In this document: positions 619 through 11,062 of the stretch, one piece after another
Numbering within the stretch: the first letter of the stretch is position 1
How the letters are laid out: every line of letters begins with the position of its first letter
DNA from: Oculina patagonica
Lineage: Eukaryota
Assembly: GCF_052425735.1 (NCBI RefSeq)
Contig: NC_135761.1
Span: 16,554,001 to 16,618,000 of the forward strand
DNA length: 64,000 nucleotides
Reading direction: 5' to 3'
Program-made: the position numbers and the translations under genes
The notes under the pieces: generated by a model
What the model was told of the DNA's origin: nothing
Database searches by the model: none
The model's input: the letters and a program-made list of their open reading frames with translations, nothing else

Positions 619-1970
619 ACAGCTAAGTTACTATAAGCAAATGATAGTTGTTATGTTAACGTTACGTTTCTCCAACTGTCCGATTTTCTTTAATGAACAA
701 TATATTCGAGATTTTCTGGTAGATCGAAATAATTACATTCACAAACGGGAAGTCTCGACAAGACCAGCTAAAAAAGCCTCTGTCGGTCTGAAAATCAAGA
801 CGTTTTCATCATTAATCATTTATGCCATAAAAAAAAAACATTGAAAATGTTAAAATGTAAAAATATATTTCCGTTTAGCTTAAAAAAAAAGCTTAAAAAA
901 CTGTGGTAAAATCTTTTTATCGTCTCGTCGAGTTCCTTGTTCGTAATGAAAAAGTAAACTAGCCTGCACGAAGTAATAAAAAAAATCAATCCATCAGTTC
1001 CATTGCGTGAGAAAAATTGTAAATAAAAAGAGATATTTTGGGCGCGCTGCCGTTTTATCACGAAATGTGGTAATACGTTTTCTTTGAGTTTCGCAAATAA
1101 AGTGGGGCGTGTAATTAGAGATCAATTAAAGTTCAGTGAAAACATGTCACGACTAATTTGCGTCTAAAATGGTGGGGTGCCGGAAATTTATTTATTGAGT
1201 CTTTAAAAATAAATTGAGGCTGTCACAAAGGGAAAATATGGTCCATTTTATTTTCCTCCTACTTCTTTATTAATAAAGTTGGCGATATATATCATTTCCG
1301 TTAAATTCTGTCCTCTTGTCAGCCCAAAGGAAGCAAATATGCAAATAGCAGGTCTCGGCTGAATTTGACACACTACGAAAAACGATTGAATTCATCTTTT
1401 TAACCTTTAAGCAATAAAGAGATTTTTTAGATAAACCAGTAATTGTTTGTAGAATTATTCTGGTAGAAACCCGGTTCAGTGTATTTGTTTTTTATTTGTT
1501 TTATTTTTTTTTTGTATGTAAAATATTGTGATATTGTTAATGTTTTTTTTTTTATTTTTATCGAAACAGAAAATGTATTTTTTAGGAATACTGATAAAAG
1601 CATCGCTCGATCAAGCAGACTAGTCGCGCAGGCGTTAAATTTTAACGTGGTAAGTTTCGCGTCTTATTAAGCACATGGGCATTTTGTCTGCGCATGCGCA
1701 AGATAAATCAGAATTCCAGATCGGCGCCATTTTCAACGTGTGAGCGCGCTTCGGTGGATTTTCAGCTGAGTGATCTACGCACTTGGAAAGCTTTCATGAA
1801 CAGATATGAAAGAGAATAACTTTTTTACATAGTCGTCTAACACTATGGATACTCGTGGTGTTTACCGTGACTTCGGATGAGGATATTTTGACGATCAAAC
1901 TGCGAACAAAACAAGAAAAATCCCCAAAACTGTGAAGTTTGACTTTTGATTTACGAAAGTTCAAGATGTC

Positions 1971-3897
1971 CACAGGTAATTTGCCTGACGAATCACACAT
2001 TTGATTCTTGCGTTTGGTTCGGCACAGTTGTAGAATCATACGAATTATTCTTATGATTCTCCACAATTGTAGAATATGTCATTGTATTTGGAAATAATTT
2101 TGTTGTGTGTAGAATCAAACACTAACGATCTAGTGTATTTCACAGGTCTGTGGAATCAAGCGGGAATCACACGTATTATAACTTATCATTCTCCGCAAAA
2201 GAAGAATACATCGCCGTTGTATTCAGAAAATAATAATTGTGTATCCTGTAAAATAGTTAAAATAAATCCAGTTGTATCCCGAACAATTCGAACCTTCCGC
2301 TATCTCGAATCTTTTCAATTCCCCTCCAGCTCATTTTCCTACTACGTTTAACCATCGATAACTTTATCTTCCGTATACCGGTAATTCCAACCTTCTCGAT
2401 TTCCTCTGAAGGCTTGAATTGTCTGTAGAATCGAGCGGGATGACAAAATCGACCAGCTGCAGTTCTACAGAGAATATATTTCGCCATCAAAACTCAAAAG
2501 ATGTTACCCAAGAACGCATGGCTACAGAAGTGAGGCACTTACCACTTGACTGTTCGGCTACACAGTTGTTTGAGTCTTATAAACTACAGTAGCTACTAAA
2601 CATGCAAACAGTAATTTAAATAAAACGTGGAATACTTCGCGGAATACTGCGTGGAATACTGCCTGATTCTTCAGGTGGTTTGTCAAATGAATATTTATTC
2701 CAATGCTCGATTCGACAGATGAATGTTTGATTCTATTAAAGGAAGACAATCCGCCCAATGCTGCTTGTCGGCTGCGTTTGCGCGATGAAAGTCAGCAGTG
2801 GAAAGCTCCTCTTATTACTAGTCGCACTTTACCCCCATATATCAATAAAATAATCAGAACTCCTTCGCCGGTCCTTAGTCTGTTACCTTCACTGTCTACC
2901 TGCACTTCGTGTCCACAATACTCACACCAGGAAATTGAGCCAGCACTGCAGTAATCTGTAAAATGCGGTAATTTTCATTCGTGCCTCCGAGACCGGGAAA
3001 TATTAAAATGCGATGGCTTCAACTAAATCAGTGACTTATTACACAGGTATGTAGAATCAAACAACAGGCTAAAATATCTATATATTATACAATTATTCTT
3101 CGAGGCAATCCTATGCGGAATCACACGATTTATTTTCTAAGTTTACAACCATGTGTAGAATCGTTTGGATTTGATTCAGCCAAATTGTGTACGCAATATT
3201 ATTCACGCAACTGATAGAAGGGTACCTTTACGCACCTATTAATGCTCAGAGAAAATATCTGATTTGTTTATATGCACGCATGCTCAGTGATGTCATGGAC
3301 AGCATAGATGGTACCACAAGTGTTGCAGGTTTGTAGTCCTTATAACTCACAGGAACTTCACTGTTAAACATCGAAGATTAATGGATGTTCCAGACGAGTA
3401 CACTACTCAGGAGACCCATGCCCACTGCTGCAGCTTATGCGGAAACAGTGGCTCGCTCAAAGCAGGGGTAACTTTTTACATAACATACTTACCTACTTTG
3501 TGACTGATAACTCAGCAAAGAAAGCCACTAAATGATTTTTTTTAATAAACATTTAAGCTTATGCAATAGTCTCCAAATTTTCGGGTTTTGATTCAATAAT
3601 AATGACTATTTGATTCTTCGAATTCACCGTATGATTCTACACGAGATTTCATGTTTTTCGCACATGATTCTTCACATTGTTTCTCGAAAACGTTTGATTC
3701 CTCGCATGAACAAAATAATAGTTCACGTGTGATTCCACAAATGAACATTTGATTCTTCGAATATGCCGCATTCAAGCGCTTGATTTTTCAGCTGATTTCT
3801 GTGAAATCATACGCGTTTGATTCAACAGTGGATATTGAAACAACTGTAGAATCAATTGTGGAATACATCGATTGATTCATCAGGCAAATTACCTGTG
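1971..3897. mobile_element. Non-autonomous CACTA/EnSpm-like element nested in the large transposon
   Basis: 24-bp TIR CACAGGTAATTTGCCTGA(C/T)GAATC at 1971-1994 and 3874-3897; 3-bp TSD GTC (1968-1970, 3898-3900); many subterminal TGTAGAATCA/TGATTC repeats; no long ORF. Confidence 0.8.
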
Positions 3898-5583
3898 GTC
3901 CATAGGAGACGAACAACACCGAAGGATAATCTCAAGATGTTGAGGTTCTATGGGCTTAAATCATTGGTTGTATTGTTAAGACGATCGTCAGATACACGGC
4001 CCTATTCAAGGTAGGAAATTTGGAATTTGATCTGATTTTGTCTCCACTTCAAAGCGAATTTGCATTTTCTTTCCAACCGCCCCCAAGTTTCAAATCACTC
4101 CAGACAACATTGTCTTTTTTTTCTCTTTACAGCCGTGTAGGACTCCAGGCTTAAAAAAATGTTCCAGTGTGCAAGATTTTAATCTTCTTATGAGAGCTTT
4201 TGGTGAAGTTTAATTCGGCAAATTTTAGTAGTCTTTCCAGCCGTGGATCACAGAGGTCTTTGGTCTTGCAGCTCTACAAATCTCCTGTACAAGGTATGTA
4301 GTGATTCACCTTTGCCGTGGTTGCAGTCTCGTTATGTCACACTTTGACTTCAATTTATTTTTTCCTTCGTTTTAGCGGGAATTTTGTCGTTGCATTTTTT
4401 TGCCTTCAAGTGCTTTCTTGAGTAAAAACTGGTGAAAATCTCTTTTATTTGACTCGCCCCCAAGTTCCGCAATACTATCAAGACTTTCTTTGCTTGTTCC
4501 TCTTTCATTATGTCTAGTTTATTTATCCAAGAAAAATGTCTGCACCTTATTTTGTGAAGCAAAACTTCTGGCCTTCGCAGTCGAAGATGGCCACTCTGTG
4601 TACGAAATATGTAGATTTCGAACCGAATGGCGTAAGCTTTATTTCACTGGAATGCCTCTGACTTGCAAACGACTGGAGCTCTCTCGATTTTTATTTTTTA
4701 ACGACTACGGTTGTCATGCTAGGAAAATGTTTGGAGAATGCAGTCTGGTTTATAGCAGAAGAAAATGTTTTGGAACACGCTGTAATGCCCAAGTTTCCTC
4801 TCATTTTAAGGTATGAAGTTTTGGAAAAAAGGTGCTTATGTTTATAATTGGCATGTATGGCAAGATGTGTGTGCCTTCAGCACCTGTTTGTTTGGGTTTC
4901 AGTACTCGCAGGAGAGACGCCTTTTATAAGCAAAACTCCACACAGAGGTCAGAGTGAATTTCTGTTATTCACAATGCTTTTAAAGATATCCAAAAATACA
5001 ATAAGTTCTCAGCAAATACTACAAATAATTATTTAATTATATAAAAGTTTTTTTGCAAATGTTTTGTAGGCATTGGCTTCAAATGGAACCACTTATAAAC
5101 TTTGCCACAAACAAAATAAAAATAGATTGATAAAGGGCCTTTTACATATGTTAATTCATAGGCCATGTTAAATGACTCTTTTTAAGATACAATATAATAA
5201 ATTTTAGTATAAAAACATTAATCTACAGTGCATGAAATGTGCCAGGAAGGAAAGTTATTTCAACAGGCACAAACCAGCCATGGTATCAGTTTGTGTTCTC
5301 TTATTATTCTTGGAGCAAAACATTGCTAAGATAGGAAATATATCTACTAAGTATTTTGCAAAATAAAGTCACAAGAGAGGCTTTGTAATTTGATCTTAAC
5401 AAGGTTGCTGAAAGACTATTTAGCCTTACAATGTATTTTAAACTAAGAAAGAAGCCATACATGTGTCTTTTGGACTGAGAAATATTTTGAGTTTTAAAAG
5501 TTCAGAGCAGGAAAGTCACGCTTGTTATTTCCTTATAATAATGATAATCATGTGAATATGAATAATTTTCTTACAAAACTTAA

Positions 5584-5940
5584 AGGAGCCATATCACGGG
5601 GATTTCGCAGATTGTTGGTCAAAACTGTTCTCACGTTAGGTTAGGCAACTTTAACCATGAAAAACATTATCTTTGAACATCTAAAGAAAGATATAACCTT
5701 AATCTGCATATAAAAAATCAAGCTATGGTTATAAATAACGATTTTTTTTAAGTTGCACGGAAACAATTTGAAAAATTAAGCCTTAATTTTTAAAGCTGCA
5801 ATCTATTTCCATCTGAGCCATCCACAGCCAAAGACGCTCGTTAATAGTATCAGTGATCTAATAGACTATTATTTTTAGGTTTCCTGTGTTACAAATATAA
5901 ATTTTCGCTGTTCAAAAATCTGTTAAAATCCGAAGTTCCT
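5584..5940. mobile_element. TTAA-flanked MITE (Kolobok/piggyBac-like target), nested
   Basis: TTAA|AGGAGCCATATCACGG ... CCGAAGTTCCT|TTAA; a related, 5'-decayed copy lies at ~22960-23248. Confidence 0.6.
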
Positions 5941-5963
5941 TTAAGTGATACAATGTACATGTA

Positions 5964-6194
5964 CCATCTTTATTATTTACTACACATTTGATGATTTCGA
6001 CATTGCTGATCCTAGCAGTATGCAGGACGTGTGTCACATATCAACCTAGTAAATGGCCCAGCTCACAACGAGTCTCTCGTAGCTCAGTTGGTTAGAGCGC
6101 CCAACCAGTATCTGGGAGGCCATGCGTTCGATTCCCGTCGGGGACTCAGATTTTTTTTTTGTCCCACGCTTGTGTCATGTTGAATAATTTCTTC
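5964..6194 (+). mobile_element. tRNA-containing SINE-like repeat
   Basis: A box TAGCTCAGTTGG and B box GTTCGATTCC in a cloverleaf at ~6071-6147 followed by a T-run; TSD ACAATG(T/C)ACATGTA at 5950-5963 and 6195-6208. Confidence 0.75.
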
Positions 6195-6291
6195 ACAATG
6201 CACATGTAGTTTTAAGACTGTTAATTTTGGTTAGCTCCAGGTTTGTGCATGATCTTTGTTCAAGTGGAGGTGAGGTTTGGGTACTTGTACT

Positions 6292-9200
6292 TTACTTAAG
6301 GCCTAAGATAGCTAGGTTTGCACCTTGTAACTGCGTTTGCCAGTCTCTGATAACCATTATTTGAAGGTACCTCACAAAGTTGCTGATATTTCCAGAGACA
6401 CTAGTTGCAACAACACCTCCATGCAAGCCATGCTTGTGACTTTCAAACAGACAAATTTCTTTTTGGTTGAAGCATAATACCATTGTCTTGTCTGGCGGAA
6501 CAATCAATACTGCAGCAAAGTTTGGATGTAGTTGATGGTATTCTACAAGATAGTCCTCAAGGTCTTCAACAGAAAAGAAACCCATGTCTGCAATGATTTC
6601 AAGCTTCTGGAAATTCTGGTCATTTTGTTGAAGGACCTGTCTGACATCTAGGTTTGGTTGATGGGCTGGCATGTTGAATGAGCTGTAAATCTGATTTCCT
6701 TTTATCATTGCGCTAGTGTAAATTGGTATGACAAGGCTTAGATCTTGCAATTGTTTAGGTATTAAAAGAGACCCCTCCAAAAATTTTTTGTCCAGTTAGT
6801 GCAGAAATTACTGTACATGCGTTGCTTCCGCCCATTCTTCCACCCATTGATGACTGGGATACGTACGAGGGCATCAACCACTCTGTCACATCTAAATATT
6901 GCTTCTGTGTCACAGATATGCGAAGAGTATCTGATCTTGGTGTTGAGGCTGGTTGGTCATTGGTACTGCTCTGGCTACCCTGGTTGGCCTTGTGCCACGA
7001 ACAAGGACATTTGGAGCAATTAACATCATTACTGGCTGTGCATAGGCTGTTATCACAGAAATTACATTTAACCTGTGAGTTATTATTAAACCTCTTATGT
7101 CCACGGACAGGATGGTGACATTTTCTACAATGTGGTGGTGCCTTACTTGGAGAAGGTGTTCTGGTGCTAGGAATTGATCCTTGGCCAAGATCAGAACTGC
7201 TAAATGGTTGGGAAGCTGGATTGAGATTAGCAAGGTCGTTGTTAAGCTGCTGTATTATGTTATCATACTCCTCCCTCTCCATTTCCCTTAAACAAGTAAT
7301 TTCATTAGAATGATCATCATCTGCTGCCACTGGTGTTGTTTGGTTAGTGTGATCATTGCCAGACTCTGGTACGCCATGGGTGGTGGATGCAGGATGTAAA
7401 ATGGCTTGTTTTGCAATTTCACCCAGTTCATTTACTTTCTGTTTCAGGAAATCCTTACATAATGGGCATGACGTTGATCCAGCAAGACATCTGTCATGAA
7501 AAGAATGACAGCAACCATGCAAGATTGTCCAATTTTCCTCCTGGGTGGACATGTTACATTCAGGTAAGTCACATTTTTTTGTTGGATCTGGCTTGATGTC
7601 AGCATGATATCCTAGTGGCAAAACATTAGTTTTCATACTGCTGTTGGGGGCCATTGTTGGTAGTGTCACATGGGTTGGAGCACTGGTGCTGCTTCTGCTT
7701 TGTGAAGAAAACCGACTTTGTCCAGGACCCTGAGAGATTTTTCTGAACATTGTGGACAGTAATTGAGCACACTTGACTTTAAGAAACTGCAGCTGATTGT
7801 GCGAAAAAGAAAACTGTTTTGGTGCAGTAAAAAATGATCTAAAGTGGGACTGTTTTTCTTTTGACTGGAAAATGGATTTTGCTTTCTTTCTAAGGTCATC
7901 AGGCGTGTCATAGTCTTTTGTTTGTGACCGAAGTATGCTATGCGTGTTTTCAACAGGATATTCATCAAAGATTGTTATGTAATTCTTGAGCAGGTTATAC
8001 AATTGTGGTGCATACTTTCCCCAGTGAGAGCACATGTTGATCCAAACGAGCGGAGCTTTGTTGTAGTGCCTCCGGCTTAAGCAGGTGAACATAATCCAAA
8101 TTCTAATCATGGCTCTGAAGTACTCAGAGAACTTGTTGAGTTTAAAGGAAATACTGTATATTGACAATACCAAAGGTATATAATTGTCTAGCAAATTAAA
8201 AAGTGTCCCATACTCCACATCTTTGAACCTAGAGAACTTTGTTATCACCGTTCCTCGTATGAGAGTCCAACCTCCATACACAATTTCCAAAATCAGACTT
8301 ACTCTCCAGGGTTTTGGTTTGTCTGCTAATTTGCTCCTAGGAAAAATTGTTTCATAAACTGTTTTGAAAAATGGGTGATAGCAATTAACAATGTGTTCCC
8401 TGCTGTTTAAGGATATGTGAAGTGGCCCAATAGTTGGCACGATAGACAAGATGGATGGCTGTGATGTTGTATTCGTGGGCAAGCTGTCTTCAGTTGGATT
8501 GTTAACCGTACCAGTGGTCAATGGAAATGAGTAGGAGCAGTGATCAGCCAAAGTATTGTCATGTTCCTGAGGAGCATCAGTCAACCCAGGATGACAGCCA
8601 ATGAACTTCTGAAATGTTTCATATGCATTTTGCCTGCAATAGAATTGGCAAGGCCAATCCCCTGGCTGAAAAACAATAAACTTCCTCATATAAGCAGCCA
8701 AGCCAGTGTTCATTACAACATCATATGCAATATCAAAGTCCTCCTTTGACTTCAGTCTGAGCTCTATGAAATCCAACAAATGTAAATCATCCATTTTCCG
8801 CATTGTTCTAACATTATCATTGTCACAAATACTGATGTACATTGATCCTGTGTCTCTCAAGTTCGGGATTAAAAAATGCTTCGGTAAGCCAGTCTGGCAT
8901 CACAGACGCATAACTAGAACTGATATCATGCATGCATGACGCAGATGTAATTAATTGTTCGCAGGATTCAATGTCAATGCCATTTTGGTCATGAACACAA
9001 TTAGCTTGATCGACGGTTACTGCTGGGATATCCTTAAAGGCTTTCACAACGATTGTGCACATTCTCTTTGCCTCAGAAGACTCGTCGTTTTGTGGCCTTT
9101 TCTTTGTGTGCACCGATGTGTAGTCATCAATGATAAGTACAAGGAGCCACTTGAATTCTATTGCTTGTTTTACAAAATCCTCAAATGATTGGGAGTGACA

Positions 9201-11062
9201 TTCAGACATTGTGTTTAAGATATTATTTACAGTTCTTCTTGCACAGCAGTGCCCCATAATGTGTTGTGTTTCAATACCTTCTTGATTTATTTGATTGCTT
9301 CTGAGGTACAGTGCATGGTCTATTTGCAGAAGATTACATGTTTGGCTCAGACAGTAGCATAAGTTGTAAATGAATGAAACCACCCTCTTTTTGTTCAGAC
9401 AAACACGATCTGCTGAGTGCCTAGAACTTGTTATTGACTCCAGAATAGTGTCAAACAACTTTGTTGCACCAGCAGAAATACAAAACTCCCTAAAACTGTC
9501 TGGATCATACACAGTTTCTTTCTTGTTTGTTACCATCTCAGAGTAAATTCTCCTTTTGACCATCTCAATTTCCTTTTTCATGTCACACCCTGTAGTGGAT
9601 TGGTATAACATTTACAAAAAACACAAAGATTGTAAAAATATTTAGCCATATTTTTCTTGCAAAATACAAGAATTTGATAAAGCATCCGACAGAATACCCT
9701 GTAGCTGCTTGCTTAATAATGACTGTTTATTTTTTGTAAGAAGGGCAAGGCTGTGTTACAGGTATTCATGTTGTACGTGTGGCTCACAGATTGTTATGTG
9801 TTAGTTAAACCGAAAATATTTTATCAAAAAATAAGCTGAATAAATAAACGAAATTGAAAAATGTACTCGAGTGCTTATCTACACCTGAAATAGTTAGGGG
9901 CAAAACCATTTGACTTTGGAGAGGGGGGGGGGGGGGGGTGGTTGTTTGACATCAAAAGACAAACTTTCCTCCAAGCAAAGAAATAATGTACATCTTTTTA
10001 ACGAAGACAAAATATATCAGCCTTGTGTCTTTTTCATCAGTGGAAAAACGGAGAAGAGAATCTTTCAAATCAGAAATCTTCCAACCCTCCCCCCTTGGTG
10101 GTGAGGCACATTATTATTGCAAGTTTAGAGTAGGGAAAGAAACATCCATTTATTCTGGTCCAAAGCCGGCTGAGATGTAATGAGCCTGGTATCTCATAAA
10201 ACACTAGATTTGTATAAAGTGTTGTCTACTGCGTTTACACAGGTGTGGAGGGCAGGGGAAAAAGTGAATTGGATTTAAATGGCTTGCGACCGGTTATTCT
10301 TCATTGAAGTTCCTTCTAAAGTGTAAACGTATTTTTATTCTGCCGAGTAAATTGTAGCTTTTAGGTGTGATACTGTTTTTTTTTCAGTTATGCAGAGAAT
10401 GCTGTCTATACAATACAATGTAACTTATTCTTCCATTAAAAAGTCGAATGGTAGGAACCAAAAGCAAATAAATTAAATTACTTTCTGCTAAAATCTTCAA
10501 TTTTTCCTCCATTTCTAAAAACGTTTCCTTTGGTATAACTACCATTTCTTCTGTTCTACCTGTACATGAACTATCACTGGCTGACTTTTCTGTTCCTAAA
10601 TCTTTCTGTTTCTTTATTCTTCCTCTCTGATTGCGATTCATGCCAACAAACTTTCAACAAAAAAGTAAACTTTTGTCAAATTTTAAAGTTATTTATTGAA
10701 GCCTTTTTACAAAACGTATTTAAGTTCACAGGGAATGAAGCACACTGAATGTTCAATAATGTCTCGATATTATTACTAACGTGATGGAATCGTTTTCCAG
10801 TGCGTCGATGTTCCTGCACAGCTCGTCTGCATCCTTCACATATTACACCCGCGTTCGTACCATCTGTCAAAACTACACCAAAACAAAACTCCAACTCTTT
10901 CACATAGGCTTCTACCTTCTGAAATGGCCTCGATTGGGATTTCTTCCTGCACACCACACAACCATTTTCGGACTTCCCTGCACTATTACACAATTCACAA
11001 ACCAATAAAAGAACAGCAACAATTTGAAGGCGCCATCGAAAAGTTTTCGCGAAGATCGCCAT
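6292..11062 (-). CDS. Putative transposase: C4 Zn finger + DDE-like core + RING-H2 + Cys/His cluster + papain-like peptidase; two +1 frameshifts
   Basis: Phase-compatible exons 11062-10781 (CAC|gttagt), 10650-10482 (aag|...GAAA|gtaatt) and 9589-6292 (tacag|GG). ORFs 8823-9611, 6755-8860 and 6292-6780 join if one base is removed at 8827-8829 and one at 6784-6789, giving ~1248 aa. Motifs: CVVC..CEGC; IIDDY, PGDWP, IGPLH, DEYPVENTH; CDLPEC..CCHSFHDRC..CPLC; GSNACTVI..LFESH. Confidence 0.75.

Follow-up and report, generated by a model that had tools for sequence, protein, structure and literature searches.

Few superfamilies of cut-and-paste DNA transposons are recognized in eukaryotes. Among them, Mutator/MULE, hAT, and P generate target site duplications (TSDs) of 8–10 bp and share a C/DxxH motif after strand 5 of the catalytic core. 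According to PMC10045372, the two Academ groups differ in this respect, with TSDs of 9–10 bp for AcademH and 3–4 bp for AcademX, and a suggestion quoted there ties the long TSD of AcademH to its helicase. Here we compare these systems with a locus of the coral Oculina patagonica, lying in a stretch of 64,000 nucleotides (contig NC_135761.1, positions 16,554,001–16,618,000; hereafter the window, whose numbering is used throughout). The minus-strand segment 7900–9589 is very probably the catalytic core of the DDE (Asp-Asp-Glu) transposase of an autonomous cut-and-paste DNA transposon, which occupies positions 1670–11191.

Ends of the element and its reading frame

The ends of the element were defined by an empty site within the window itself. 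In a self-comparison, the sequences 1–1670 and 11192–12214 were collinear with 18626–21347 at ~95% identity, which constitutes a local segmental duplication; about 9.5 kb has therefore been inserted in one of the paralogues and is absent from the other. The window copy was inserted after this duplication. At the paralogous empty site (~20279–20288), a single copy of GTCTAATTA(A) is present, and this target is duplicated on both sides of the element (Table 1). A generic inverted-repeat search of the window did not reveal the terminal inverted repeats (TIRs), which were located from the empty site. They are 29 bp long, start with AGCA, and are complementary to each other at 27 of the 29 positions.

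The same two asymmetric ends were found in another coral assembly, where a copy of 6.6 kb (L001:8495–15137) is flanked by a 9-bp TSD, CCGATATTA. The ends of the two copies are 100% identical over 28 nt, and their coding regions are 78% identical. Two copies from coral metagenomes (TSDs AGCCTACTGT in L008 and (A)GATGGGGCT in L006) and one from a soil contig (AGAAGGTAT(A) in L038) bring to five the insertions with a TSD of 9–10 bp. In addition, contigs from other sequencing runs part from the window at 11190–11193, so that further copies, set in other flanking sequence, share this terminal nucleotide. The difference in length between the window copy and L001 lies in the 3' part, of which only 1670–1969, 3923–4283, and 4610–4642 could be aligned to L001. 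The extra ~2.9 kb consists of nested repeats, including a short interspersed nuclear element (SINE) that resembles tRNA-Thr.

Within these ends, three adjoining minus-strand open reading frames (ORFs; 8823–9611, 6755–8860, and 6292–6780) make up one protein of ~1100 residues with two changes of frame. Its intact homologue P0002 has 1088 residues and is 74% identical to the window protein. The translation holds, in order, LVLIIDDY, FQPGDWP, IGPLHISLN, KPKP, RRHYNKAPL, and FDEYPVENTHS, a set for which chance is excluded by a wide margin. An earlier note on this DNA, written from the letters alone, had proposed these motifs as an atypical DDE core and assigned codons to the key residues. When mapped on P0002, the codons were exact: D152 corresponds to 9128–9126 (GAT), D308 to 8659–8657 (GAT), H387 to 8419–8417 (CAC), and E543 to 7951–7949 (GAA). 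To this should be added that the frame of the window copy is interrupted twice, by shifts of one base close to 8827 and to 6784, so that the core straddles the ORFs 8823–9611 and 6755–8860.

Both frameshifts are changes of a single base in a homopolymer context. In four other public runs, which carry several organism labels, near-identical contigs were obtained. The extra base at 8827 was missing in all the contigs that cover it, and the letter at 6784 was missing in contigs of all four runs, one X1 contig keeping the window form. Since near-identical contigs lack the shifts, intact reading frames exist in nature, and the shift at 8827, at least, may be specific to this copy or an assembly error. 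In the public annotation, the protein ACROYT_G012677 (P0001) of O. patagonica is 100% identical to the window protein. Its gene model (window 6292–8800) begins immediately downstream of the first frameshift and is spliced around the second; it is a broken transposase annotated as a hypothetical host protein of 782 residues.

Table 1. Features of the element in window coordinates, with the basis for each
Feature	Position	Strand	Basis
Left TSD copy, GTCTTATTA (9 bp, 10 bp counting the next A)	1661–1669		Paralogous empty site
3' TIR, AGCACATGGGCAT...GCATGCG	1670–1698	-	Complementarity to the other end; same pair in L001
3' non-coding part with nested repeats	1699–6291	-	No protein domain found
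Viral-tegument-like deubiquitinase (VTD), predicted	6292–6900	-	Model, Foldseek, profile search
Second frameshift, one base in an A6/T5 run, ~6784	6780–6790	-	
RING-H2 finger, C-x4-C-x14-C-x-H-x2-H-x2-C-x6-C-x2-C	7457–7573	-	Profile against PDB
DDE core with all-alpha insertion domain	7900–9589	-	Alignments, AlphaFold model, structural search
Key codons of the core: GPLH; R (E+7)	8428–8417; 7930–7928	-	
First frameshift, one extra T, TATTTGTGA versus TAT TGT GAC in homologues	8825–8829	-	
Probable first exon, C4 zinc finger of FAM60A/zf-AD type	10676–11062	-	Profile match; conserved in L001
5' TIR, AGCAGAGGGGCAT...GCATGCG	11163–11191	-	Copies with other flanks end there
Right TSD copy, GTCTTATTA	11192–11200		Junction comparison

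Some further observations concern the repeats and transcription of this region. The tRNA-Thr-like SINE occurs three times in the window, at 5994–6147 (nested in the 3' region of the transposon), 372–521, and 18996–19147, and ARAGORN called a tRNA-Thr (AGT) at 6072–6147. Just outside the duplicated flank, a hairpin at 12440–12638 with 65-nt arms (95% complementary, 69-nt spacing) may be a miniature inverted-repeat transposable element or a foldback element. In two runs that appear to be RNA, a junction from 7563 to 8412 was observed on the plus strand (7446–7563 and 8412–9853) with a perfect AG/GTAAGT...AG boundary, that of a canonical GT-AG intron. It was covered about 10x as deeply as the unspliced parts and was absent from the two DNA runs. 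This junction represents a spliced RNA antisense to the transposase gene, which may be a host transcript or long non-coding RNA in which some copy has been exonized. Sequence nearly identical to 6200–11200 (53–84% of the 31-mers) was present in runs from a coral metagenome and from organisms with four different codes, in nine studies; either these runs come from closely related corals, or the element has spread very recently.

Catalytic core and accessory domains

In an alignment of the core and RING region of 56 sequences from cnidarians, a sponge, a brachiopod, a protist, and fungi, the residues D113, D269, G345, H348, N352, E355, E504, and H507 were invariant, and D114 and R511 nearly so (residue n of the alignment is residue n+39 of P0002). 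The same columns were invariant in a separate alignment of the 12 most distant members. An AlphaFold2 model built from the 56-sequence alignment (predicted local distance difference test, pLDDT, 87.8; predicted template modelling score 0.87) placed D113 in strand 1 (residues 106–120), D269 directly after strand 4 (264–268), and GPLH directly after strand 5 (340–344). Residues 346–500 were modeled as entirely helical, and E504 lies in the helix 501–512, with the conserved R511 seven residues on. The model therefore predicts, with high confidence, the canonical topology of an RNase H-like fold, into which an insertion domain is placed behind strand 5. Both the conservation of the D/D/E residues in homologues and the RNase H-like fold, on which the idea of a DDE core depended, were thus borne out, the fold as a prediction with the acidic residues at their canonical positions.

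Only DDE enzymes stood at the top of an exhaustive structural search with VIA-align, led by Hermes (Z 10.1), Tn5 (10.0), the P element (9.6), the IS256-family ISCth4 (8.3), and RAG1 (7.0). Retroviral integrases scored Z ~8, aligned across model residues 106–542. The best rows of Foldseek for the core were RAG1, Hermes, and the P element, at weak E values of 0.06–0.3. Sequence and profile searches of the core gave no match in the PDB. Likewise, none of the Pfam models for MULE, hAT, P, CACTA, KDZ, piggyBac, and Harbinger matched any of ~200 family members at E<=0.05–10; with Pfam, the three ORF pieces and these members gave only RING models and one sub-threshold match to DUF6589.

The single gene encodes, in order, an N-terminal C4 zinc finger (on a probable first exon), the DDE core, a RING-H2 finger, and a C-terminal deubiquitinase of the VTD type. 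In the RING finger, all eight ligands (C3H2C3) are at least 90% conserved, and the profile matched RING-H2 E3 ligases in the PDB (RNF38 at E 3.6e-5, also Arkadia and RNF165). The ligand pattern and the profile similarity identify a RING-H2 finger, and with it a putative E3 ligase. The last ~230 residues were modeled with a pLDDT of 92.8 and resembled VTD structures, as indicated by Foldseek (8adc, E 5e-7; M48 of murine cytomegalovirus, 3e-4) and by a profile match to 8adb (E 1e-3). They carry a conserved Cys in GSNAC and an Asp/Glu-x-His motif, which is DSH in the family consensus and ESH in the window copy and P0002. The Asp-x-His signature defines VTDs, and fusions of cnidarian VTDs to transposon-associated domains have been mentioned in passing (PMC9741609). 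With the papain-like VTD fold, the catalytic Cys, and this motif, the domain is a putative deubiquitinase of the VTD family.

Upstream of the core, the ORF at 10676–11062 matched FAM60A (E 7.9e-6) and zf-AD (E 6.6e-4). The upstream ORFs of relatives (L001 and L006–L009 carry such ORFs) also matched FAM60A, with a best E of 2e-8. This zinc finger is presumed to be the DNA-binding domain of the transposase. Its resemblance to the N-terminus of FAM60A/SINHCAF hints at a shared origin of the two.

The earlier note had seen neither an XPG nuclease nor a helicase between the TIRs, and the domain scans agree with it. In the rest of the element (1670–11191), no ORF with any domain, and specifically no helicase and no XPG, was found. 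Around relatives, neither was found at ~20 loci from corals and the remaining cnidarians, from Lingula, Gigaspora, and Diversispora, and from metagenome contigs. Called genes and all ORFs of at least 110 aa were scanned, the latter at 18 loci, and the neighboring ORFs held only retrotransposon and unrelated host domains. XPG_N and XPG_I matched no family member scanned.

Several points weigh against the reading of this locus as an autonomous cut-and-paste transposon. The window copy is frameshifted in the assembly, and the splicing of the zinc-finger exon to the main exon, which we infer, was seen in no contig. That the three acidic residues cluster is predicted from their topological positions and the alignment spans, and the core obtained the weak Foldseek scores given above. 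Activity, too, is a prediction, from structure and from the insertion polymorphism between the paralogous segments.

Distribution of the family and its compact copies

An exhaustive HMMER search returned 1140 cluster representatives at E<=1e-3, of which 178 remained at E<=1e-30. The cnidarian members come from Scleractinia, Actiniaria, Octocorallia, and Scyphozoa, and other named members from the sponge Oscarella pearsei, the brachiopod Lingula anatina, and the rotosphaerid Pompholyxophrys. Among Glomeromycotina, members were found in Gigaspora, Diversispora, and Entrophospora; the arbuscular-mycorrhizal homologues that the earlier note had mentioned are therefore real, and the patchy distribution that it proposed holds, with members scattered across animals and Holomycota.

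A metagenome scan added 252 loci, many of them on AT-rich contigs from soil, for which the nearest proteins are glomeromycete. There the element is compact (3.8–4.1 kb), and its single gene encodes the core and the RING finger. Its TIRs of ~50 bp start with AGCAGGGTGGACAT or AGCATAGCGGACAT and share the AGCA...G-rich...CAT terminus with the coral elements. Of the two marks of transposition sought around fungal-type homologues, the AGCA TIRs were thus present on soil contigs, and the TSD of 9–10 bp was found on L038 only; it was not seen on several other TIR-bearing soil contigs. The flanks of the latter are probably products of chimeric metagenome assembly of a multi-copy element. Many of the soil contigs L023–L085 break off only a few bases from where the TIRs end.

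In a quick maximum-likelihood tree, which has long branches and was midpoint-rooted for drawing only, two groups were recovered. The fungal and rotosphaerid sequences fell in one, together with two of unknown source, and the other contained Lingula, Oscarella, and one unknown sequence beside a large cnidarian clade. This topology tentatively fits an old, patchy inheritance better than a recent transfer between animals and fungi.

Placement among known transposons

The placement to which we give the most weight, at slightly less than an even chance, is that of an Academ sub-lineage nearest to AcademH that is missing the helicase gene, and in which the RING finger may correspond to the PHD finger reported in some animal AcademH transposases. 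The TSDs of the five insertions have the AcademH length, and the hosts reported for AcademH (animals, Basidiomycota, Ascomycota, and Mucoromycota, according to PMC10799480) can be set beside the animals and Glomeromycotina recorded here. In one member (P0139), the RING finger scores weakly as a PHD. PF20231 (DUF6589), whose enrichment has been reported for a rust fungus, is also weakly matched once; Academ is most abundant in Pucciniomycotina. This match, in the Oscarella protein P0234, reached 17.7 bits (gathering threshold 27; E 7e-4 to 1.6e-3). However, it lies under the cut-off and concerns only one of more than 150 members, the others scanned being unmatched, and the connection of DUF6589 to Academ is an argument from shared abundance in rust fungi. 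The resemblance to AcademH, moreover, is one of description (TSD length and host range) and not of sequence or profile comparison. Finally, the helicase is missing at ~20 loci, and the copies of 3.8–4.1 kb on soil contigs have no room for one.

Somewhat less probable is a separate and unnamed lineage of eukaryotic DDE transposons at the level of a superfamily, whose likeness to Academ would stop at the order of the motifs and the length of the TSD. In favor of it, ~200 members match no Pfam transposase model, the core has no sequence match in the PDB, and in structure the core matches hAT, Tn5, P, and RAG about equally, without a clear nearest relative. The RING-H2 finger and the AGCA termini have been kept from corals to fungal-type soil contigs, and the architecture was not found described in the literature searched (Repbase and Dfam lay outside that search). 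Against it, the repeat libraries of corals, anemones, and Rhizophagus may already list the element, as Academ or otherwise. We tentatively put forward, with the same reserve, the fuller form of this proposal: an ancient lineage that has no name yet and may have the rank of a superfamily, which would combine a RING-H2 ubiquitin "writer" with, in cnidarians, a VTD "eraser", and which would generate a TSD of 9–10 bp without a helicase.

It is unlikely that the element belongs, as a highly diverged member, to Mutator/MULE, hAT, or P. In favor of this reading, a TSD of 9–10 bp is typical of MULE; the best structural matches include Hermes, the P element, and ISCth4; and GPLH sits where the C/DxxH motif would. 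The motif, however, has Gly in place of Cys or Asp, the models PF10551, hAT, and P remain unmatched in any member even at E<=1–10, and Z scores of ~8–10 are at the level expected for a shared fold only. Hardly any credence can be given to a domesticated host gene, as implied by the protein-coding annotation ACROYT_G012677 in the O. patagonica assembly, which is contradicted by the TIRs, the TSD, and the empty paralogous site, as well as by copies with different flanks, the frameshifts of the assembly, and a gene model that begins after the first of these and splices around the second.

For the DDE transposon itself, a plausible mechanism can be outlined. The N-terminal zinc finger would bind a conserved subterminal sequence, and a multimer of the transposase would pair the AGCA ends, which the D/D/E triad would then cleave through two-metal-ion catalysis. 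Strand transfer staggered by 9–10 bp would produce the TSD. The insertion domain and the invariant His may act at the cleaved end, as does the C/DxxH region of the hAT, P, and RAG enzymes, and the RING and VTD domains may adjust how the transposase itself, or chromatin or repair factors in its vicinity, are ubiquitinated. Since a DDE core is here joined to a RING-H2 finger and a deubiquitinase, ubiquitin signaling is suggested to be a target of manipulation by the element during transposition, in parallel to the RING of RAG1 and the VTD/OTU domains of Helitrons.

A widespread lineage unseen by Pfam represents a gap in the annotation of transposable elements of corals, sponges, and mycorrhizal fungi, where its genes are now recorded as hypothetical host proteins, ACROYT_G012677 being an example. 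Because near-identical copies without the frameshifts occur in several data sets, the family may still be active, and it is a possible candidate tool for cnidarian transgenesis. If it is sister to AcademH or inside it, the long TSD of AcademH would stem from the transposase and not from the helicase, against what is suggested in the statement quoted in PMC10045372.

Compared with the described systems, the element shares with AcademH the TSD of 9–10 bp, the occurrence in animals and in fungi including Mucoromycota, and a large DDE transposase, to which a cross-brace zinc finger (PHD) has been reported to belong in one animal sub-lineage (Kojima 2020, as cited in PMC10045372 and PMC10799480). 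It differs in that the defining superfamily 2 (SF2) helicase of AcademH is missing at every locus examined, and in the presence of RING-H2 and VTD. The D..D..E order is also that of AcademX, which has an XPG domain not found here and a TSD of 3–4 bp. With MULE, the element has in common a TSD of 9–10 bp, boundaries formed by TIRs, and one DDE transposase only, which has a zinc finger at its N-terminus; it differs in its other motifs and accessory domains, and the MULE model of Pfam is unmatched.

As in hAT (Hermes), P, and RAG1/Transib, the core is predicted to be split by an all-alpha insertion that follows strand 5, and a conserved His comes directly behind this strand. There is no sequence similarity to these enzymes, however; GxxH replaces C/DxxH, and the TSD of 9–10 bp contrasts with 8 bp in hAT and P and 5 bp in Transib. 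RAG1 also carries a RING, which is N-terminal in RAG1 and C-terminal to the core here. The VTD domain resembles those of Helentron-type transposons and of herpesviral tegument proteins (PMC9741609) in its fold, its catalytic Cys, and its Asp/Glu-x-His motif, but it is fused to a DDE transposase with a RING, and not to RepHel as in Helentrons. By analogy, the transposase would work like the DDE transposases with an insertion domain, namely those of hAT, P, RAG/Transib, and MULE/IS256.

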